Shown here piece after piece: positions 8,399 through 32,115 of a DNA stretch of 64,000 nucleotides. The notes under the pieces are model-generated. The model was not told the origin of the DNA and ran no database searches. It saw nothing but the letters and a program-made list of their open reading frames with translations. The stretch lies in the sequence record NC_048054.1; one strand, 5' to 3'. Both the position numbers and the translations under genes were made by a program. Every line of letters begins with the position of its first letter. The stretch's first letter is position 1.

Positions 8399-8895
8399 TG
8401 GAAACAAACTCAGTGGACGAAAGTCCTAATAACGCAAGGCATCGCATTTTCTTCAAGCAGCCGAAACGAGTACCTCCCTTCGATACAGCTTTCGTTCGTT
8501 CCTCAAACAAGGAAGGACTGAAAGTTCTCCTATCGGCTGCTCCTGAACATTGTCAGATTATTTTGTTTACGGACGGCCCCGGCGCCGCTTACGCCCTGAA
8601 ACGCCTCTTTAAGCGCAACTTCAAACTCTGTTCGCAAGCTCCACAACTTGACCTTAGGACACTTACGTTCACCGGTCAGGTCGTTCTACAGTTCGTTCGC
8701 GGTGGTGCAGTCGTCGATCCGCTTTCGCGTTACTTCTGTGCTGGTGATAGCTATCTGCATGAGCTTGCCCAGACAACGAAGATTGCCGAAGTCGATACAG
8801 ATACGATTGATATGTTCTGTTGCGGCTTAGGGTTTCATCGTGCGTTACGCGAACGCGGTCGAGGCCGTTCTCTCGTATTCGCGGAGGAACAATGA
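8398..8895 (+). CDS. Hypothetical protein
   Basis: 165-aa ORF coupled on both sides. Confidence 0.55.
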   Translation: METNSVDESPNNARHRIFFKQPKRVPPFDTAFVRSSNKEGLKVLLSAAPEHCQIILFTDGPGAAYALKRLFKRNFKLCSQAPQLDLRTLTFTGQVVLQFVRGGAVVDPLSRYFCAGDSYLHELAQTTKIAEVDTDTIDMFCCGLGFHRALRERGRGRSLVFAEEQ

Positions 8896-9920
8896 GTAGA
8901 TCGTTCGCCTCTATCGGGAAAACTCCCGTTGCTGGCACGACACCGAAGATGAAAATCAAGTACGGCAAGCTGCCTATGCTGCATGTCGTTGATGCCTCGA
9001 ACTGGATGTGCCGAGCATACTTCGCCACGAACAAGAACCCGACATACGCCAAAGACGGTACTCCCAACTACGGCCTGCGTCAATTCATGAACATGGCGAA
9101 AGACTTGATTGATATTGCGGCGAAAGACCCAAACGGTGCGTACATTGCGTGGTGCTTTGACCCAAGCAGTTCCGCGACATGGCGCTACCGTGCAATACAA
9201 CAATGGGCTGCCGAGCACAAAAAGAAATACGTTAGTCAAGTCTTCAAGAAGTCGACCGATTACAAGGGCAACCGAGATCGTTCGCTGACTGTTGAGCTGC
9301 CTGTGCAAATGGAACTGGCCCAACGTATTCTCGAAATGGCTGGCTACTACGTTGGCATAAAAGCGCCTTACGAATGTGACGACCTCGTTGGAACATTGAG
9401 TGACCGCTTCAAGCACAACTATCTGGTCAAGCTGTATTCGCGTGATAAAGACTACGTGCAACTTGTGGACCACAAGAACGTTGAGCTTATCATGCAGGCT
9501 CAGTCTAATGCAGTCGAACGTCGCTTCACGCTTAAAACTGCCCAAGGATTCTTTGGCGTACCTCCAGATCGCGTTATTGATATGCTGGCACTTTCCGGCG
9601 ATAGCGTTGATAACGTTCCAGGGATTCCGGGCATTGGCGAAAAGACTGCGGCCGAGTTCATTCACCGTTATGGCGGCGCGCTCGAACTTCGAGATGCGTT
9701 GTTGAGCGGCAAGTTGAAGTCGAATGCTCGTTGGGCGCAAGCACTAACAGGCAAGATACCTTCAATGGATATTGAATTGCAAATGGAGCTTGTAACTATC
9801 GACCGTAACGTTCCGACTTTGCCTCGCAAGATCGAAGCGTTCGCACCAGGCAGACCTGATATAAAAGCGTTGAAAGCAACCATGAAACGCTTAGGTCTGC
9901 CGCATCTACTACACGTCTAA
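8892..9920 (+). CDS. 5'-3' exonuclease / flap endonuclease (PolA N-terminal, RNase H type)
   Basis: VVDASN, YKGNR, YECDDLVGTL, SRDKDYVQL, H3TH GDSVDNVPGIPGIGEKTA; start moved to ATG 8892 (GGAGG SD). Confidence 0.9.
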   Translation: MSRSFASIGKTPVAGTTPKMKIKYGKLPMLHVVDASNWMCRAYFATNKNPTYAKDGTPNYGLRQFMNMAKDLIDIAAKDPNGAYIAWCFDPSSSATWRYRAIQQWAAEHKKKYVSQVFKKSTDYKGNRDRSLTVELPVQMELAQRILEMAGYYVGIKAPYECDDLVGTLSDRFKHNYLVKLYSRDKDYVQLVDHKNVELIMQAQSNAVERRFTLKTAQGFFGVPPDRVIDMLALSGDSVDNVPGIPGIGEKTAAEFIHRYGGALELRDALLSGKLKSNARWAQALTGKIPSMDIELQMELVTIDRNVPTLPRKIEAFAPGRPDIKALKATMKRLGLPHLLHV

Positions 9921-10473: not shown

Positions 10474-11066
10474 TGGATTTGTCTGCTATCGGTTACGCTC
10501 CGAAGCAGTTCCGAGTAATCCCCGTTGAGAAGGGTAATCTCGTTACTGACTTCATTCAAGGTAAGTTCCGCGTTATCGGCGTTGAGTGCAACGCTCGTGG
10601 TGCTTACGGTAGTCCTATTCAAAAGAGTATCGCACGTCGCTTCCCGGAAGTTGTGCGCAAGGTCGAATCTATCGACTACGAACACGAACTAACAATCGGT
10701 AAGACGCACATGGTGCGTGTTGGTACTCAACATCGCCGCAATATGTTTGTTGCTAACATGCACATTGCTCGCGGTTTCGGTCTCGGCCTGAATGGTTCTG
10801 CTGAGGGCTTTCATAAGCCTATCAATCGTTTCAGTGAGAAGTTCCTGACGCGAGCATTTGAAGATATGCTGGAGCAGTGCGACAAGCTGAACATCGCACT
10901 CGACAGGCAGATCGCCATTCAGCGTTTCTATGGCGGACTCGGCGGGGTTTCGTGGGAAGAAGTATGTGCTGTCCTTGATGTTATCTGTGAGAAACATCAG
11001 TTCAACATGTACGCATATCTCCCACGCAACTACAACACTAACTATGTGCGGGGCGTTGCGCAATAA
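10473..11066 (+). CDS. Macrodomain protein (ADP-ribose processing, DarG/Poa1-like)
   Basis: KGNLV, CNARGAYGSPIQKSIARRFPE, IAIQRFYGGLGGVSWEEV match the macrodomain pattern. Confidence 0.7.
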   Translation: MDLSAIGYAPKQFRVIPVEKGNLVTDFIQGKFRVIGVECNARGAYGSPIQKSIARRFPEVVRKVESIDYEHELTIGKTHMVRVGTQHRRNMFVANMHIARGFGLGLNGSAEGFHKPINRFSEKFLTRAFEDMLEQCDKLNIALDRQIAIQRFYGGLGGVSWEEVCAVLDVICEKHQFNMYAYLPRNYNTNYVRGVAQ

Positions 11067-11078
11067 CTCTGGGGTGTA

Positions 11079-11423
11079 TTGATGAACACAATACGCGGAT
11101 TTGATTGGCTCTTTTACGGAGATGGAACCGATAGTGGCCAACACTCTATTTTAAGCGTCGTTGTTGAACAAGCAACGAAATCAGTGCAGGTGGAAGTGAA
11201 GCCAGGAATGGCGGTGCCTGTAATTCAAGCGATTCAGGAAAATGAAGTCCTGTACGCTCAGACGGAAGAAGGCTTGTACCGCATTCGCTATAGCTGTTCT
11301 TTCCGTACTCTGGATGCTAACGCATTCCCGAAAGACAAAACTGTTTTCCGCTTGAAGCTGATTGCATGTGACTTCCTTGCGGGTGTAACAACGCACGATA
11401 AGCTGTCGGAGTACGTGCCATGA
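11079..11423 (+). CDS. Hypothetical protein
   Basis: 114-aa ORF in operon. Confidence 0.5.
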   Translation: MMNTIRGFDWLFYGDGTDSGQHSILSVVVEQATKSVQVEVKPGMAVPVIQAIQENEVLYAQTEEGLYRIRYSCSFRTLDANAFPKDKTVFRLKLIACDFLAGVTTHDKLSEYVP

Positions 11424-12181
11424 TAACTGTACAGAAAATTGAAGCCCGTTTAAAGAGACTGGATTATACTCGGCCCTCACCTGATCGTGAGATGCTTGAG
11501 GGACTTATGAAAGATGGGCGCACTCGCATTCTCAGCAAATCTGCTGAAAGTGATTTGTGTGCCGACTCAGATCGTTACTTTGAGTTTTGTCTTTCGCAGG
11601 TCGGCTCTTTCTGTACTGCATCTTACAACGCTGTAGAGATTGGTCTGTCTCTCAACATCCAACCGATTTATATCGCTGCTGCGATTCATCTGTATGGCAG
11701 CGATTGGCAGTTCCGCTTCCTCGAACTTAAACGCTTCGGCCAATTGGCTCGTGGTGATTACTCGGTGTGGAAGTCTGCTGACGCGTGGTTCGGTTTAGGT
11801 GAGTGCCGTCGCCGTCTGGTCAGTGTGGGAGTCTCGTCTGAGATCTCAACCGGTCAATCTATTCTTCGCATGGCTGTACGCAAAGGCGAGATGGATAAGA
11901 TTCGTGAGATTGCTGAGGCGCATCCACATCGCATGATGTCCATTCTCGGCATGAAGCGTGAGCCACTGTATACTGACCCGCGCATCGTCGCATCAAAGAA
12001 AGCGCGTGAGAAAGCAAAAGCAGATGCTGCGGCTGCCGGTAAGAAACTGGCTGAGCCTCGCTCCTATGCAGACCTTACTCCTGTGTTCAACGGCCCCATC
12101 GCTCCTCGTGACGTTACTCGTGGTTTCAGTGATTCATCTGAAACTCGCGGTACGGTTAACGGTCGTCGTTTTCGCGTTTAA
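11420..12181 (+). CDS. Hypothetical protein
   Basis: 253-aa ORF, ATGA overlap. Confidence 0.55.
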   Translation: MITVQKIEARLKRLDYTRPSPDREMLEGLMKDGRTRILSKSAESDLCADSDRYFEFCLSQVGSFCTASYNAVEIGLSLNIQPIYIAAAIHLYGSDWQFRFLELKRFGQLARGDYSVWKSADAWFGLGECRRRLVSVGVSSEISTGQSILRMAVRKGEMDKIREIAEAHPHRMMSILGMKREPLYTDPRIVASKKAREKAKADAAAAGKKLAEPRSYADLTPVFNGPIAPRDVTRGFSDSSETRGTVNGRRFRV

Positions 12182-12194
12182 TAACTGCGAACGG

Positions 12195-12200
12195 TAATTT
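12195..12200 (+). promoter_or_regulatory. TAATTT candidate promoter of the cmoA operon
   Basis: 33 nt upstream of ATG 12233. Confidence 0.35.
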
Positions 12201-12232
12201 CGAGCGTCAAAACAAATAACGGAAATCTAATC

Positions 12233-13003
12233 ATGAGCAACGTTGATAAAACAATGCCAGAAGGTCGCTGGGAGTTTAATGAGCCAGTAGCTTCTGTATT
12301 CGATAACATGCTGCAAAACTCAATCCCATCGTATGACCGTATGCGTGACCTGACGTACCGTCTTGGTCGCCAGTTCGTAACACCCGGTTCGGCCATTGTC
12401 GATCTGGGTGCATCACTCGGTCGTGCTATCGAACCGTTCTGTGCTGAGTTCGGTGAGTATCGTTATCTCCATGCTGCTGATCGCCCTGAGCCAGATCGTG
12501 AAGTAGGTAACCTGTACTGCTGCTACGAAGTCGCACCTGCGATGCTTGAGCGTCTGCGTGAAAACCCTGTACTGAAAACTGCTAAAGCGCAAATCAGTAG
12601 CGAGTCGCTGGTGGAAGTAGACACGTTCCGCTTCGACGAGCAGGTTGAGTGCTCACTGATTCTGTCTGTGCTCACTCTCCAATTCACGCCGATTGAACAT
12701 CGTCAGCACATTCTGGAGAAAGTGTACGACTCGTTGCAGAAAGGCGGCGCGTTTATTCTGGTTGAGAAAGTGTTGGGTGACGACAACTTCCTCGACCGTC
12801 TGCTGGTAGACACCTACTACGGCATGAAAGGCGATAACGGTTACTCGCAAGAATCTATTGCGGCTAAACGTAAGTCCCTCGAAGGCGTACTGGTGCCTGT
12901 GAAAGCTGCATGGAACGAAGAACTGCTGCGTAAAGCTGGCTTCGACCGTGTAGAGTGTTTCTACCGCGACCTGAACTTTGCTGGATGGATCGCAGTCAAA
13001 TAA
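12233..13003 (+). CDS. cmoA: CmoA-like carboxy-S-adenosylmethionine synthase
   Basis: WEFNEPVASVFDNMLQNSIPSY, DLGASLG, TLQF, VEK, NGYS...AKRKSLEGV, AGF...NF match the CmoA pattern including the carboxylate-binding KR arginine. Confidence 0.85.
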   Translation: MSNVDKTMPEGRWEFNEPVASVFDNMLQNSIPSYDRMRDLTYRLGRQFVTPGSAIVDLGASLGRAIEPFCAEFGEYRYLHAADRPEPDREVGNLYCCYEVAPAMLERLRENPVLKTAKAQISSESLVEVDTFRFDEQVECSLILSVLTLQFTPIEHRQHILEKVYDSLQKGGAFILVEKVLGDDNFLDRLLVDTYYGMKGDNGYSQESIAAKRKSLEGVLVPVKAAWNEELLRKAGFDRVECFYRDLNFAGWIAVK

Positions 13004-13014
13004 GGTAAAACGAA

Positions 13015-14070
13015 ATGAGCGTAAGTGGTGATATTTATAACATCCCCCAACCGTTCGCCATGTATTGTGGCAACTGTGAAACTCGTGCTCAGGCAAAAGT
13101 GGCCTCAGGCACAATTGAATGGGCTCCAGAGAAAGTCTGCTGCGTTGTTGCAGACGATAACGGCCTGTTCCCTGATGTTCCCCACGTCAACATCGCAAGC
13201 GTCCACGCTACAGATGCGCGTACTCTCGTAATCGGCTGTGCGCCGTTTGGCGGTAAGATTGACGAGCACATGGACCGCACTATTCGCAGTGCTATCTATC
13301 GTGGTCTGAACGTCGCTGCTGCAATGCACAATCGTCTGGCCGATAATGCCGAATACGTTGCGCTGGCTGAACAGTACAACGTCAAGCTGTATGACTTCCG
13401 TCATCGCCCTGATGCGTACCCTCTCGGTACTGGTGAGAAGCGCAAAGGCATTCGTCTGCTGACTGTCGGCACTGATAGCTCTTGCGGCAAGAAGTTCACG
13501 ACGCTGACGCTGCACCGCGCACTGAAAGAGATTCACGAAGACACCGTGTTCTGTTCAACTGGACAGACTGGCTTCCTGATCAGCAACTGTGGTATCAACA
13601 ACGATACTCTGGTGGCTGACTTCCTTGCTGGCGCTGCCGAGTCATTATCGCCTGACGGTCCTGCTGATCGTATCTATCTGATCGAAGGTCAAGGTGCTAT
13701 CACTCACCCAGCTTATACTGGCGGCAGCATGAGTCTGATTGCTGGCTCGCAGCCTGACTACTTCATTATGTGCCACGCGTACGGACGTAAGAACCAGCTC
13801 GGTGTTAAACGTGCGCCGAATTTGATGTTCGAATTGAGCGCCAATATGGACGCTGCTGCAATTCACGGCCTAACTCCTAAGTATCTCGGTATCAGTGTCA
13901 ACTTCTCTGAAAGCGGCCTGACGATTGCGGAGCAGAACGAAGTGATGTGCGATATGCAGCATATGTACGGTCTGCCTGTATTTGACCCGTCGCGTGATCA
14001 AGAGTATATCGCAGAGATCGCCAATAAGCTCCAGCAGGAAGCAGAGAGCAGGAGCAATGCGAATGGCTAA
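13015..14070 (+). CDS. DUF1611 / DgcN-like P-loop protein
   Basis: TLVIGCAPFGG, MHNRL, RLLTVGTDSSCGK, TGQTG, VADFLAGA, IEGQG, HPAY, QPD, GISVN, LPVFDP. Confidence 0.85.
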   Translation: MSVSGDIYNIPQPFAMYCGNCETRAQAKVASGTIEWAPEKVCCVVADDNGLFPDVPHVNIASVHATDARTLVIGCAPFGGKIDEHMDRTIRSAIYRGLNVAAAMHNRLADNAEYVALAEQYNVKLYDFRHRPDAYPLGTGEKRKGIRLLTVGTDSSCGKKFTTLTLHRALKEIHEDTVFCSTGQTGFLISNCGINNDTLVADFLAGAAESLSPDGPADRIYLIEGQGAITHPAYTGGSMSLIAGSQPDYFIMCHAYGRKNQLGVKRAPNLMFELSANMDAAAIHGLTPKYLGISVNFSESGLTIAEQNEVMCDMQHMYGLPVFDPSRDQEYIAEIANKLQQEAESRSNANG

Positions 14071-14932
14071 ACATCCTCTTCGCAAGCTGTTTGAACAGCA
14101 CGTAAAGAAAGAGGTCAAAGCCAAAGAAGTGGCCGTTCTGCTTTCGAGCGGCCTCGACGGTTTGGTTAGCGCACTCGCCGCGCATGATCTCGGCATGAAG
14201 GTACATGCCTTTACTTTCCAGATGGGCGACAACCAGAGCTTCGATAGCAAACACGCTGCAATCGTCGCACAGAAGATGGGCTGGGAGTTCACGCTCGTCA
14301 AAGTGCCTACCTCTGACAGTGCTATCGCTCAGGGCTGGAAGACGCTGCATAAAAAGTTCCGCTGCATTAAGAAGCGTGACTATGAGTGTGCGTACCCTAT
14401 GGTGTATTGCTACAAGGCGATCAAAGAAGCTGGGTTTAAGTACGTGCTCAGTGGTCTGGTGGCAGACGGTTACTTCCTGTATAACCGCAATACGCACATT
14501 CAGAAAGTAAGCGGCCCGCACTCAGTCGCTGAAAAGTATCACGCGTACCGCACCGAATACTTCCGACCGTGGATCAAAGACGGTAAGAAGTCTCTCGGTG
14601 TTGACGGGTATAACCCAAGCGGTATGCTGCAACACGAAATGCTGTGTGACCACTTCGGCCTTGTTCACGTTAACCCGTGGATGCAGCCGAAAGTATTTGA
14701 TTACTTCATCAAGTACACATGGCAGGAACTCAATCAGCCCAAGCAGAAACAACCTATTACAGAAGCATGGGCTGACCACATCGCTATTGTAGGGCATCGC
14801 CCGCATCGCGGATATCAAACAGAAGCTGGAGTACCTGCGTACTTCGAACGCTTACTGGATAATCCTGAGATCAACTTCAACGGGCGCAAGCGTATCATGG
14901 ATGTTGCCCGTGATTGGTCAACGAGGACGTAA
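14063..14932 (+). CDS. Asparagine-synthetase-like ATP-dependent amide ligase (synthetase domain only)
   Basis: PP-loop VAVLLSSGLDG, VLSGLVADGYF, NP(W) motif; no glutaminase domain; AGGAG SD supports ATG 14063. Confidence 0.7.
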   Translation: MAKHPLRKLFEQHVKKEVKAKEVAVLLSSGLDGLVSALAAHDLGMKVHAFTFQMGDNQSFDSKHAAIVAQKMGWEFTLVKVPTSDSAIAQGWKTLHKKFRCIKKRDYECAYPMVYCYKAIKEAGFKYVLSGLVADGYFLYNRNTHIQKVSGPHSVAEKYHAYRTEYFRPWIKDGKKSLGVDGYNPSGMLQHEMLCDHFGLVHVNPWMQPKVFDYFIKYTWQELNQPKQKQPITEAWADHIAIVGHRPHRGYQTEAGVPAYFERLLDNPEINFNGRKRIMDVARDWSTRT

Positions 14933-14933
14933 C

Positions 14934-15554
14934 ATGTTAGTACACATCATTGACGGTGGCGTAGGCTGCAATTATGTAGCTGAAAAATTGCGTGAGTCGA
15001 ATATCAACTGTCGCACACACGCTCCAAACAATCCGCGCATTCGCGCTCAGTATGCTCCTTACCCTTCACTGTCTATGGGCTTTGAGGCACAGGAGATCGA
15101 GAAACATATCGGTAACGTGCTGGGCACCTATCGCGGACTGTTCCTGATCAGTAGCTACGTCGGCTCTCTTGTCGCACGTAGCATGATTGATCAATGCGGC
15201 CAGAGCCATAACATCATCTATTGCGATGACTTGCAGTGTGGCTCAACGCCTGTTGTTGCTTCCTCAATTTCTGTAAACATCTACAAGAAGCAACGGCAAC
15301 TCGGACGTATCGCTGGGCGCATCAAACACTTCGACCTTGACCACGAATTTATTATCGCTGATAAGTCAGTGCGGTTCGCGTCAGGTTCGGAGTTCGATGA
15401 ACACGGCGCGCGTGAAGAACTGGACGATACGCCTAAGTTCTTATCGAGTCCGTCAATGATTGTTGCAGCACACAAACTCGGTGTGAAGCGCAGCATGTAT
15501 CACAACTATGCAGGGTTGGTGCGAGAGTTCCTCGAAAAGCGCCAGCAGCAATAA
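14934..15554 (+). CDS. Divergent Asp/Glu-racemase-like protein (putative)
   Basis: N-terminus HIIDGGVG...APYPSLS...LFLISSYVGS parallels MurI IGVFDSGVGG...PYG.KS...IVIACNTAS; catalytic CNT not conserved. Confidence 0.35.
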   Translation: MLVHIIDGGVGCNYVAEKLRESNINCRTHAPNNPRIRAQYAPYPSLSMGFEAQEIEKHIGNVLGTYRGLFLISSYVGSLVARSMIDQCGQSHNIIYCDDLQCGSTPVVASSISVNIYKKQRQLGRIAGRIKHFDLDHEFIIADKSVRFASGSEFDEHGAREELDDTPKFLSSPSMIVAAHKLGVKRSMYHNYAGLVREFLEKRQQQ

Positions 15555-15566
15555 CGCGAGGGCACG

Positions 15567-15830
15567 ATGATTAATCGCTTTCAGTTAAAACGAGTTCCAG
15601 TGATTGAAGCCTGTCAGTGGAACGGTGAGAACGTTGAGGAGATGAATAACTTCCTCAACGGCAGCGGTTACGTTGTAGGGCGTTACGTTCAAATCGGTGT
15701 GACTGACCAATACGGTAAGCCTACTCTGGCGAACGTGGCAGTTGGCAACTACGCAGTAAAACACGAAGACGGTAAGTACGACGCGATCACAGCGTCTGAC
15801 CTGCACACCAACTACGTGTTGGCAGATTGA
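15567..15830 (+). CDS. Small conserved-type phage protein
   Basis: PVIEACQWNGEN...GNYAVKHEDGKY pattern seen in many phage small proteins. Confidence 0.55.
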   Translation: MINRFQLKRVPVIEACQWNGENVEEMNNFLNGSGYVVGRYVQIGVTDQYGKPTLANVAVGNYAVKHEDGKYDAITASDLHTNYVLAD

Positions 15831-15834
15831 GGAC

Positions 15835-16293
15835 ATGATGAACCTGTTTTCTATTTTAAAGCAGCAAGTGAAGAAAGCGCTATCTACCGAAGCGAACCAC
15901 GAGCCTGAGGTTCGCTCTCTGTTTGACTGGCGTTACTCTGTTGAAATCAAAGGCCAGATGTATATCGTCGGTAAGACTGGCGCTAACACCTGCTTCTATA
16001 TTGAGCCAGGTACTTCTGAGCCTATCGCTTGTTACCCTGATGCGTTACTCGAAAAGATCGACGAGTGGGGAGCGAGCAAGTACGTGTCGTATTCGATCTT
16101 CTTCAAACGCTTCGATAGCCCTGTTGCCGAGAACATCAAAACTCTCGAAAAGGCAATGAGTGGTAAACCGAAGTCCTTTAAGAAAGGCTACTTCATCTGT
16201 GGCGTGACCCCGAAAGGCAAGCGTGAGAAACTCTATCGCTTGCAGCAAGGTCTGTCTGGTATGCAGTGGGTAGCTGTGGAGAAACAAGCATGA
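15835..16293 (+). CDS. Hypothetical protein
   Basis: 152-aa ORF, GAGG SD. Confidence 0.55.
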   Translation: MMNLFSILKQQVKKALSTEANHEPEVRSLFDWRYSVEIKGQMYIVGKTGANTCFYIEPGTSEPIACYPDALLEKIDEWGASKYVSYSIFFKRFDSPVAENIKTLEKAMSGKPKSFKKGYFICGVTPKGKREKLYRLQQGLSGMQWVAVEKQA

Positions 16294-29985: not shown

Positions 29986-32115
29986 ATGATCATCAAGCCG
30001 CCTACGATGAAGGAAATCAACAAGCTAGATAAACCCTGGCGTGGTATGAGTTTCTTCGCAGGTTGCGGTGGTTCTTCTACCGGTCACAAGATGGCCGGTA
30101 TCAACATCGTGCTGAGTAACGAGTTCGTTGACCCAGCGCGTGAGTCGTATGAAGCAAACCACCCGACAACCAAAGTGCTGCCGCATGACATTCGCCGTTT
30201 AGACCCAGGTAAGTTGTTACGCTTCGCTGGTCTGGCTAAAGGCGAATTGGATTTACTTGACGGTAGTCCTCCTTGCTTTACCGAAGACACTATCATTCAT
30301 ACAGCAGACGGCATGAAGTTCATTTCGGACATGAACGTCGGCGATAAAGCGATGACAAGTATTGGTCAGTATCTTCCTGTGTATGACACTATGGTTAGAC
30401 CATATGTCGGTACCATGCACAAGATTGAAACGCTGATCAGTAGCAACAACGCAACGCCTGAGCACCCGTTCTTCGTTCGTCGTCCGCTTGAATCTGGTGG
30501 CTTCTCTGACCCGTTCTGGTGTGATGCTAAAGACGTGCAGGAAGGCGACTTGGTTGGTACACCACGAACTACTCCTGATATCGGTGCTGATGCAGTACAT
30601 GCGCAAATGGAACAACTGCCAAAGTTGATTCAGCAGTGGGTGTGCATCCCTGAGTTCTGGTGGATGGTCGGTCACTGGTGTGATCGCGGTTCAATCGAGA
30701 CTGTTAGTGGCGTAGAAGTTGTTAGCTTCGAATCGCACACCAGCCTCGAAAATGCGATGATTGAGCAAGCGTTTGATGCGCTTAAACTTAGCAGTCTGAA
30801 TCGTATCGACCGCATGACCGCACAGCGCAAAACGTTCCGCACTGTTATCGACGCCGAGCTGGTGCAGTTCCTGCGCCGCTTCGTCAGTGCTGGCAATAAC
30901 ACGTTCTCTCGCCGTCTGCCTGCTTTGGTGTTCCACCTGAGCACCGAACTGAAACGTCAATTCATTCTCGGCTGTGCTGGGCATGACTACGTTACAGCGA
31001 TGGGCACTGGTCTTGCTATCACGTCTGCAAGCAAACGCTTCCTGCTTGAGCTGAACTACCTGTGCTGTTCAGCTTTCAATCGTCCTCTGTTTGACGGTAT
31101 GATTTGGGGTGACGTGTATTTCGGTAACGCGTTAACTCCTCGTGAGCGTAACAGTTCGCGTGAGCATCTCGGCTATCTGTTCCTGCAGGAAGAGCACAAC
31201 TTCTTCCACGAGTTCGATAAAGAAGACCCGAACCTGTGGGTTGAAGTGATTGAGAACCTTGCGTATCAGGCTACTTGTGACGTCTATAACTTCTCTGTTG
31301 AAGTTGACGAAACCTACGTGGCTAATGGTACTGTGGTGCATAACTGCAAAGGCTTCTCGACTGCTGGCGTGAAAGAAGAAGGCTGGGGCAAAGAAGTTAA
31401 GTACAGTGATAACAAGTATCAGCAGGTTGATGACCTGTTCGATCAGTATTGCCGTATGCTGGAAGGCATGATGCCGAAAGTGTTCACTGCGGAGAACGTT
31501 AGTGGTCTTGTTAAAGGAGCCTCGAAAGGTTACTTCCTTGAGATCATGAAAGAGTTCGACAGGATTGGGTATTACGTCCGAGCGCCGCTGCTTAATGCTG
31601 CATGGCTTGGTGTGCCTCAGTCCCGTGAGCGTATCATCTTCATGGGTGTACGCAAAGACGTAGCACACGCTCTCGGCTATAAGAGCAATCAAACCGCTGT
31701 GCCTGATGTTGTGCCGTGTGAAACAATGGCGTTCCTTGCTGATGCGCTACCGCACATTCAACGGTATAAGTCCACGAAGAAAGATATCATTACGTATCTG
31801 CCTGCGATGAACGGACCGATGCCTACGATTACTGCGGCTGATGCAATCGCATATGAGACTGCACGATTCTCGTCTGCGGGTTTCATTGAAGACAACAAAG
31901 GCCATCGCCGTAAACTGACCATCGACGAACTCAAAGTTGTTTCTGGTCTGCCGTCTGATTATAAGCTGGTCGGCAAGTTTGAAGAACAATGGGAACGTCT
32001 TGGCCGCATCTGTGTGCCAGCAATGACACACGCCGCATCCAAAGCGCTTATCGAACACGTCTTGATTCCTTATGCGAAGAAGCGTAAGAAGAAGCCTGGC
32101 GATATCTTTAAGTAA
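29986..32115 (+). CDS. C5-cytosine DNA methyltransferase homolog with intein; candidate carboxymethyltransferase
   Basis: Motif I FAGCGG, IV GSPP-C(KGFS) after splicing, VI ENV, VIII QSRERIIF; motif X reads GRICVP instead of GN(S/A)VP. Confidence 0.85.
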   Translation: MIIKPPTMKEINKLDKPWRGMSFFAGCGGSSTGHKMAGINIVLSNEFVDPARESYEANHPTTKVLPHDIRRLDPGKLLRFAGLAKGELDLLDGSPPCFTEDTIIHTADGMKFISDMNVGDKAMTSIGQYLPVYDTMVRPYVGTMHKIETLISSNNATPEHPFFVRRPLESGGFSDPFWCDAKDVQEGDLVGTPRTTPDIGADAVHAQMEQLPKLIQQWVCIPEFWWMVGHWCDRGSIETVSGVEVVSFESHTSLENAMIEQAFDALKLSSLNRIDRMTAQRKTFRTVIDAELVQFLRRFVSAGNNTFSRRLPALVFHLSTELKRQFILGCAGHDYVTAMGTGLAITSASKRFLLELNYLCCSAFNRPLFDGMIWGDVYFGNALTPRERNSSREHLGYLFLQEEHNFFHEFDKEDPNLWVEVIENLAYQATCDVYNFSVEVDETYVANGTVVHNCKGFSTAGVKEEGWGKEVKYSDNKYQQVDDLFDQYCRMLEGMMPKVFTAENVSGLVKGASKGYFLEIMKEFDRIGYYVRAPLLNAAWLGVPQSRERIIFMGVRKDVAHALGYKSNQTAVPDVVPCETMAFLADALPHIQRYKSTKKDIITYLPAMNGPMPTITAADAIAYETARFSSAGFIEDNKGHRRKLTIDELKVVSGLPSDYKLVGKFEEQWERLGRICVPAMTHAASKALIEHVLIPYAKKRKKKPGDIFK
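30274..31344 (+). mobile_element. Intein (357 aa) with degenerate LAGLIDADG region
   Basis: CFTEDT start, ATPEHPF block B, VYNFSV...VVHN end, Cys+1 is the MTase catalytic Cys; decayed blocks WMVGHWCDRG and FILGCAGHD. Confidence 0.9.

Follow-up and report, generated by a model that had tools for sequence, protein, structure and literature searches.

The gene AD1_017 (positions 13015-14070, forward strand) lies in the window, the stretch of 64,000 nucleotides (nt) of sequence record NC_048054.1 analysed here, and encodes a DUF1611/DgcN-family enzyme of a phage subtype designated 'C/Y', as assigned from Pfam, NCBIfam, PDB and the predicted fold. With about even confidence, it is predicted to be a neofunctionalised member of its family that serves as an accessory fourth enzyme of the CmoA/CmoX/CmoY system of DNA modification, an N-acyltransferase on the amino-acid moiety handled by the adjacent ligase. 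Its contribution would probably be an extra step in the hypermodification of 5-carboxymethylcytosine (5cxmC), coupled to the ligase step. A CmoY-like ligase gene stands directly downstream of the DUF1611 gene, or past one racemase gene, in 22 of the 22 phage-clade loci with DNA, and a gene for CmoA, for a CmoX-type C5-methyltransferase or for both is usually adjacent. The sequence-only reading had proposed a DgcN-like enzyme repurposed for DNA modification and tied to adjacent cmoA- and asnB-like genes, and had named a lack of such linkage among phage homologues as what would speak against it; the linkage was looked for, and the unbroken ligase adjacency strongly supports the proposal. That these genes belong to the published CmoA/CmoX/CmoY system had not been recognised in that reading. 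It offered two mechanisms, action on a DNA-linked amine or production of the amine donor for the ligase, either of which may apply.

Linkage of the DUF1611 gene to the 5cxmC genes

The published phage 5cxmC system starts with CmoA, the source of carboxy-S-adenosylmethionine (carboxy-SAM). Its CmoX, a homologue of the C5-methyltransferases that has an SPPC motif and R350 as its key Arg, then produces 5cxmC in DNA, and CmoY, an asparagine-synthetase-like ligase, couples glycine to 5cxmC in Synechococcus phage S-B43 (PMC12783734). The base has been known as a natural DNA base only since 2025; Yang et al. (Nat Commun 2025) considered that other ligase clusters probably take other amines and that further amide modifications await discovery (PMC12783734). 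DUF1611, DgcN, racemase and glycosyltransferase partners are absent from the text and supplements of that paper.

A 5-kb query covering positions 11000-16000 of the window matched Dickeya phage vB_DsoM_AD1 (MH460463; 261,658 bp; genus Alexandravirus) with 100% identity and unshifted coordinates. In that record AD1_017 is annotated as 'putative DUF1611 domain-containing protein'. Dickeya, the host of this jumbo phage, is a potato pathogen. In Day et al. 2018 AD1_017 appears only as a gene unique to AD1 in comparison with phages JA11 and Y3, and restriction or modification data on AD1 are not reported there (PMC6143709).

By sequence, AD1 appears to carry a complete 5cxmC set, made up of CmoA-like AD1_016, CmoX-type AD1_048 and the CmoY homologue AD1_018. 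AD1_016 (12233-13003, forward strand) matches PHROG 4752 (E 3e-80) as a putative CmoA-like carboxy-SAM synthase; its best NCBIfam match is CmoA TIGR00740, at 144.8 bits, below the cut-off of 193.3, and its homologue in Erwinia phage Y3, 86% identical, is annotated as carboxy-SAM synthase. AD1_018 (14063-14932, forward strand), a CmoY-like amide ligase of the clade termed 'LigA', matches Pfam Asn_synthase (E 1.4e-13), the only match to that family in the AD1 genome, and its start overlaps the stop of AD1_017 by 8 nt. The protein of 289 amino acids (aa) consists of the PP-loop Asn-synthase domain alone, without a glutaminase domain, is basic (isoelectric point, pI, 9.4; net charge +12), and is 33% identical over 84% of its length to the S-B43 ligase SpCmoY, of which it is the sister in the ligase tree. 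The third gene, AD1_048 (29986-32115, forward strand), lies 15,054 nt (~15 kb) downstream of the ligase gene and encodes a CmoX-type DNA cytosine C5-carboxymethyltransferase with an intein (Pfam DNA_methylase, Intein_splicing/Hint). It carries both features by which CmoX is recognised in PMC12783734, namely SPPC and an Arg that aligns with R350 of SpCmoX, as do the methyltransferases of the metagenomic loci L019 and L020, and would be the enzyme that makes the 5cxmC handle. AD1 resembles S-B43 in having a putative CmoA-like synthase, an SPPC/Arg-350 C5-methyltransferase and an AsnB-like ligase. The S-B43 system, however, stops at the glycine amide and needs only its three enzymes, whereas AD1 has a DUF1611 protein in addition, and its CmoX is distant and carries an intein. 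The intein is placed directly after SPPC, and likewise in the unrelated metagenomic contig L112 (3688-5988), which bears a CmoX-DUF1611-ligase-CmoA operon.

A word-based protein search gave 54 DUF1611 homologues; genomic context was taken for ten of these, together with IMG/VR and GenBank loci, and the genes for CmoA, CmoX, both ligase types, the racemase and a glycosyltransferase (GT)-like protein were mapped in the loci by tblastn. In IMG/VR the scan with a single protein reached close relatives only, and an alignment query reached L019 and L020. Within the GenBank phage collection, DUF1611 occurs in 34 records, and a ligase at least 83.7% identical to AD1_018 occurs in those 34 and in no others. 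Sister phages that lack DUF1611 (Y3, SNUABM_30, _5, _2, _35, _36, _39, _52, phB78 and fHe-Yen9-02) have a ligase only 22-29% identical to AD1_018 in the corresponding position, flanked by CmoA and the homologue of the next gene, AD1_019. Given this 34/34 co-occurrence and the divergent ligase at the same site in the sister phages, the locus behaves as a swappable cassette in which DUF1611 and ligase move together. Most of the phage DUF1611 genes come from the genomes of jumbo phages or from long contigs of viral origin, but several of the metagenomic contigs are shorter pieces.

Family, fold and conserved core of AD1_017

The open reading frame (ORF) of AD1_017 encodes 351 aa, is stop-free, and is closed on the opposite strand. 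Both Pfam domains score above their gathering thresholds: DUF1611_N (PF17396) at residues 53-131 (E 1.5e-17; 64.1 bits against 22.6) and the DUF1611 P-loop domain (PF07755) at residues 138-328 (E 7.6e-46; 156.5 bits against 25). The NCBIfam DgcN model is covered at positions 1-317 of 326, so that the full-length family match recognised from the letters alone holds. The three motifs named with it are intact where they had been placed: the P-loop-like GTDSSCGK at residues 152-159 (13468-13491), TGQTG at residues 182-186 (13558-13572) and EGQG at residues 224-227 (13684-13695). PHROGs assign no family to AD1_017. Promoter and terminator scans gave no enrichment over shuffled sequence.

The AlphaFold model (24 homologues) has a mean predicted local distance difference test score (pLDDT) of 93 and a predicted template modelling score (pTM) of 0.88, and agrees with the Pfam assignment. 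Its best structural match in the PDB is 7XRJ, 'N-acetyltransferase DgcN-25328', with template modelling (TM) scores of 0.80/0.85, which is also a sequence match (E 2.8e-51). The next matches, at TM 0.78-0.86, are the DUF1611 structures 2OBN (Anabaena) and 2G0T (Thermotoga TM0796), which share the fold but are cellular, only 24-26% identical, and have no described function. The N-terminal domain and the two-domain layout give weak structural matches to the coenzyme A (CoA)-binding succinyl-CoA/acetyl-CoA synthetase chains.

The C-terminal domain matches the P-loop folds of dethiobiotin synthetase and cobyrinic acid a,c-diamide synthase, and weakly MurD. Enzymes of the BioD, CobQ and Mur types use ATP to activate carboxylates or carbonyls before attack by an amine. 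It is accordingly conceivable, though very unlikely, that AD1_017 is an ATP-dependent, ADP-forming ligase that extends the residue coupled by the CmoY-like ligase with a D-amino acid at its free carboxylate, which would give a dipeptide-decorated cytosine. Such peptide extension would be in keeping with the D-amino-acid heritage of the DgcN family and with the racemase genes found in some cassettes. Against it, the only characterised DUF1611/DgcN member is deposited under the title of N-acetyltransferase (7XRJ), and Mg-ATP chemistry is doubtful for AD1_017 because its Walker A motif has no Ser/Thr directly after GK (GKK in AD1, GKM in 7XRJ).

At 42 positions the phage and cellular proteins alike are at least 95% conserved, and AD1_017 retains them; they include K28, W36, H105, R129, R143, R147, the GTD...GK loop and TGQTG, and further D197, D202, E209, EGQG, H231, D248, C253 and H254. 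Since this invariant core is unchanged, the family chemistry is probably kept in the phage proteins. The only known chemistry of the DUF1611/DgcN family is D-amino-acid N-acylation, and acetyl-CoA is said to be the donor used by DgcN.

AD1_017 shares with DgcN and 7XRJ the two-domain architecture and fold, the motifs GTDxxxGK, TGQTG and EGQG, and the 42 invariant residues. It is nevertheless, judged by its score, its residues and its genomic setting, not a DgcN equivalog: the NCBIfam DgcN model (NF041892) scores it at 281.8 bits, below the equivalog cut-off of 480, an enolase-type partner is missing, and four polar residues are replaced (see below). The DgcN-DgcA pair forms a pathway from D-Glu to L-Glu in D-amino-acid catabolism, as cited in PMC12363236 and PMC10845958. 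The best cellular homologues, at most 42% identical to AD1_017, come from Pectobacteriaceae, Vibrio, Sphingomonas, Steroidobacteraceae and others, and in the sampled cellular loci the DgcN-like gene is followed by an enolase-superfamily gene (DgcA type), a class IV (D-amino-acid) aminotransferase gene, or both. AD1_017 has neither as a neighbour and sits in a DNA-modification operon. The absence of an enolase-family partner, already noted from the sequence, was borne out genome-wide: MR_MLE_C (enolase superfamily, DgcA type) has no match in the whole 261,658-bp AD1 genome, and the control genomes were matched. A gene of the alanine-racemase family was likewise not found anywhere in the AD1 genome.

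These differences bear on the possibility that AD1_017 is an auxiliary metabolic gene, which would N-acetylate D-Glu or another D-amino acid of the host pool and transfer no atoms to a DNA base. It could do so by draining D-Glu or D-Ala from peptidoglycan synthesis, or by removing D-amino acids that compete at the ligase. The full-length similarity to DgcN and the conserved catalytic core would suit such a role, and the acidic, cellular-like charge of the protein (pI 5.45, net -11) would suit an enzyme of free metabolites. The score far under the equivalog cut-off, the missing DgcA partner and the loss of the four polar residues in the AD1 subtype speak against it. So does the fact that phage DUF1611 is never found away from a CmoY-like ligase in the 22 loci and in many cases sits squeezed in between CmoX and CmoY, a placement that a host-takeover gene does not need. 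The fixed operon position and the lost DgcN-type pocket residues thus also disfavour the role in the host D-Glu or peptidoglycan pool that had been offered as an alternative from the sequence, and we regard it as highly improbable.

The remodelled pocket and the proposed reaction

Outside the invariant core, the phage proteins differ from the cellular ones by V128F, [P/A/S]195N, [I/V/M]196N, A198T, V237G and G240S. AD1_017 has lost four polar residues that cellular DgcN and 7XRJ have in common (R180C, H219R, D221Y and H243A in AD1 numbering), and T297F is a further replacement of a residue found in both. Two phage subtypes can be told apart. The 'C/Y' subtype, which includes AD1, has R180C, D221Y, H243A and T297F, with position 219 variable (Arg in AD1), and pairs with LigA-clade ligases; the racemase is confined to these cassettes. 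The 'R/H/D' subtype keeps R180, H219 and D221 like cellular DgcN and 7XRJ, and in every examined locus pairs with LigB-clade ligases, never with a racemase. By secondary structure, the changed positions would lie at the C-terminal strand ends of the P-loop domain and in the loops that follow, the active-site region of this fold class. R180, H219, D221 and H243 may be binders of D-Glu. That an Arg, an Asp and two His are gone, and a Tyr and a Phe gained, reads as a change from recognition of an acidic side chain to that of a smaller or less polar one.

The reaction proposed for AD1_017 would follow from the three steps of the known system. CmoA would make carboxy-SAM, from which CmoX would place a carboxymethyl group onto C5 of DNA cytosine to give 5cxmC, and the CmoY-like AD1_018 would adenylate the 5cxmC carboxyl and join it to an amine. 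Because the whole invariant family core is kept, AD1_017 is taken to remain an N-acyltransferase that depends on acyl-CoA and acts on a head group of the D-amino-acid type, at the alpha-amino group; with the acceptor pocket rebuilt, its acceptor would no longer be D-glutamate. It would most likely acetylate, or otherwise N-acylate, a free amine of the amino-acid moiety coupled to 5cxmC, before or after the coupling. 5cxmC would thus end up as an N-acyl-amino-acid amide, as against the glycine amide of phage S-B43. In this scheme we infer that the enzyme depends on CoA, that it N-acylates, and which acceptor it uses, with what stereochemistry.

A precedent for the acetyl-capping of a DNA-borne amine is gp48 of phage PaMx11, a GCN5-related N-acetyltransferase (GNAT) that caps 5-aminomethyl-deoxyuridine in DNA (PMC8989533). 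In line with the role proposed for AD1_017, it is a phage enzyme that finishes a hypermodified pyrimidine by N-acetylating an amine left on it. It differs in having the unrelated GNAT fold, in belonging to a thymidine pathway, and in that its activity has been reconstituted, whereas AD1_017 has the DUF1611 fold, belongs to a cytosine pathway, and has a predicted role.

Several points weigh against this proposal. An ordinary amino acid ligated through its alpha-amine, as SpCmoY does with glycine, leaves no free amine. Since an N-acetyltransferase needs one, the proposal depends on a donor with two amino groups, for example meso-diaminopimelate, lysine or ornithine; as a speculation, meso-diaminopimelate of the host would fit the racemase-less cassette. 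The acidic AD1_017 gives no sign of its own DNA binding, and CmoX is acidic too; net charge was therefore dropped as a test of DNA binding. Residues are assigned to acetyl-CoA or D-Glu from conservation and secondary-structure position rather than from a structure of a complex. Finally, the co-variation of pocket subtype with ligase clade could reflect linkage alone.

The free-amine problem is avoided in the main rival explanation, an acyl relay, which we consider unlikely and yet ahead of both peptide extension and a pure host-metabolism role. Here the part of the ligase would end with activation of the 5cxmC carboxyl to an adenylate, or to a CoA thioester if a thiol then attacks, and AD1_017 would form the amide by transferring this substituted acetyl group to the alpha-amine of a D-amino acid. 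The AD1 subtype would produce 5cxmC-D-Ala, and the R/H/D subtype 5cxmC-D-Glu. Such an amide is itself an N-acyl-D-amino acid, the product class of DgcN, and the relay can do without a diamino donor. Because 5cxmC is chemically a substituted acetic acid, its D-amino-acid amide mimics N-acetyl-D-Glu. The relay would explain why R180, H219 and D221 are kept in the early-branching phage proteins, whereas in the AD1 subtype Y221 and F297 fill the pocket and R180 is lost; the phage-wide V128F, I196N, A198T, V237G and G240S could then be an enlarged acyl pocket. It would also explain why the alanine-racemase-like gene is optional, as D-Ala and D-Glu are already present in host cells.

The ligases themselves offer a further argument for the relay. 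The second Gly of the AsnB-type SGxGxD loop (residue 133 of AD1_018, at about 14459-14461 of the window) is kept in none of 15 DUF1611-associated ligases of both clades, against 6 of 7 stand-alone ligases, a correlation that amounts to about three independent contrasts with one exception. It is present in SpCmoY, in the ligases of Y3, SNUABM_30, _5 and _2, and in that of Staphylococcus phage F1; the exception, fHe-Yen9-02, has Ala. Other points tell against the relay. A CoA thioester tethered to DNA, or a DNA-bound adenylate handed from enzyme to enzyme, would be without precedent, and SpCmoY, the sister of the AD1 ligase, completes the ligation alone (PMC12783734). AD1_017 is acidic, and the division of its changed residues into an acyl side and an acceptor side is, without coordinates, guesswork. 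It is thus doubtful that cytosine is decorated with D-amino acids in this way, the ligase activating, the DgcN-derived enzyme adding D-Ala or D-Glu, and the fuller cassettes supplying a phage racemase and then glycosylation. If true, this would be the first nucleobase bearing a D-amino acid and the first two-enzyme adenylate/acyltransferase relay on DNA.

The accessory N-acyltransferase remains the favoured reading, and it would give DUF1611 a second function. The AD1_017 gene and its family label (GenBank) and the 5cxmC system (PMC12783734) are already known. The literature searched, in which no mention of DUF1611 concerns DNA modification, does not describe a DgcN-derived enzyme as a fixed companion of this system, with racemase and glycosyltransferase as options. 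The loci define a conserved sub-family of 5cxmC systems with an extra DUF1611 enzyme, which includes biocontrol candidates against Dickeya and Erwinia, and at least three undescribed cytosine hypermodifications are predicted. They also form a natural series, from Y3 and SNUABM_30 with the ligase alone, through AD1 with DUF1611 and SNUABM_7 with the glycosyltransferase added, to SNUABM_23 with the racemase too. The subject is relevant to the escape of phages from restriction and to new enzymes for site-directed DNA derivatisation.

Descent, cassette variants and neighbouring genes

The DUF1611 tree was built from 98 proteins (16 phage, 76 cellular and 6 outgroup) by a quick method without an approximately unbiased (AU) test. 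The phage proteins form one clade with a Shimodaira-Hasegawa-like approximate likelihood ratio test (SH-aLRT) support of 99 and a stem length of 0.86, placed within proteobacterial DgcN-like sequences; this separate, long-stemmed position is a further difference between AD1_017 and DgcN. The phage gene appears to derive from a single capture from bacteria, with strong divergence at capture. The ratio of nonsynonymous to synonymous substitution (dN/dS) of AD1_017 against three related phages is 0.10-0.15, similar to that of neighbour genes, and on this ratio AD1_017 is taken to be a functional gene under purifying selection. Between AD1 and Erwinia phage pEa_SNUABM_33 (locus L011) the synonymous divergence (dS) of the DUF1611 gene is 0.63, at 89% amino-acid identity, as against a dS of 0.08-0.18 and identities of 99-100% for the flanking CmoA, ligase and AD1_019 genes. 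It seems that the DUF1611 gene alone was swapped for a diverged allele by recombination. Seven IMG/VR sequences classed as viral (L021-L027, 30-58 kb) carry a DUF1611 protein about 30% identical that falls outside the phage clade. No CmoA, CmoX or ligase neighbour was found in them, and they were used as outgroup only; their DUF1611 genes are probably bacterial genes flanking prophages.

The simplest arrangement, CmoA-DUF1611-LigA, is that of AD1, SNUABM_33, SNUABM_22 and Alexandra. A glycosyltransferase gene is inserted in the SNUABM_7 group (CmoA-GT-DUF1611-LigA), and a racemase gene as well in the SNUABM_23, SNUABM_1 and SNUABM_17 groups (CmoA-GT-DUF1611-racemase-LigA). Metagenomic loci of the same ligase clade read DUF1611-racemase-LigA (L003) and GT-DUF1611-racemase-LigA-DAHP synthase (L006), where DAHP is 3-deoxy-D-arabino-heptulosonate 7-phosphate. 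With the other ligase clade the orders are CmoX-DUF1611-LigB-CmoA (L019, L110 and L112), CmoX-DUF1611-LigB (L109), CmoA-DUF1611-LigB with CmoX nearby (L020), and chorismate mutase-CmoA-DUF1611-LigB (L111). The contig P0030, which is outside the 22-locus count, reads CmoX, chorismate mutase, CmoA, DUF1611 and a 271-aa protein.

The racemase of the fuller cassettes is an alanine-racemase-family enzyme that matches alanine and serine racemases best in the PDB and retains, from alanine racemases, both the GYG tyrosine and the lysine motif for pyridoxal phosphate (PLP); its presence points to D-amino-acid chemistry. The gene of ~410 aa found upstream in some cassettes encodes a putative glycosyltransferase of the GT4 type, assigned from weak Pfam matches and chiefly from Atlas features scoring 0.97-0.98; a PDB profile search with this protein gave nothing useful. 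In metagenomic phage contigs, a gene for DAHP synthase (L006, 8943-9806) or chorismate mutase (L111, 36-317, and the P0030 contig) lies near CmoA. These genes look like a phage-made supply of prephenate, the co-substrate of CmoA, a supply raised as an open point in the 2025 5cxmC paper (PMC12783734). The Y3 cassette, which has no DUF1611, contains a 2-oxoglutarate (2OG)-Fe(II) oxygenase gene, Y3_020 (L009, 4095-4733), between the ligase and the AD1_019 homologue; it may be another tailoring variant of the 5cxmC pathway.

AD1_019 (14934-15554, forward strand) encodes a conserved 206-aa protein whose N-terminus contains IIDGGVGG. Its homologues lie downstream of the ligase, with 0-2 genes between, in Y3, SNUABM_30, SNUABM_5 and fHe-Yen9-02, and one follows the ligase in every cassette type, whether DUF1611 is present or absent. 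AD1_019 was considered as a replacement for DgcA and ruled out, being equally present in phages without DUF1611. No match was found in Pfam, NCBIfam or PDB, including PDB and Pfam profile searches at E up to 10; the predicted fold has a pLDDT of 42, and Atlas gives a weak alpha/beta-hydrolase lead.

Elsewhere in the window, AD1_011 (8892-9920) is labelled 'putative DNA polymerase I'; only the N- and C-terminal domains of a 5'-3' exonuclease of the flap endonuclease (FEN) type match, and a polymerase domain was not found in this ORF. A search of sequencing runs with the cassette (12233-15554) gave no match in any run recorded as RNA. Two wastewater metagenome runs of 2025 contained 95% of the sampled words, and phages with an AD1-like cassette are thus present in wastewater.

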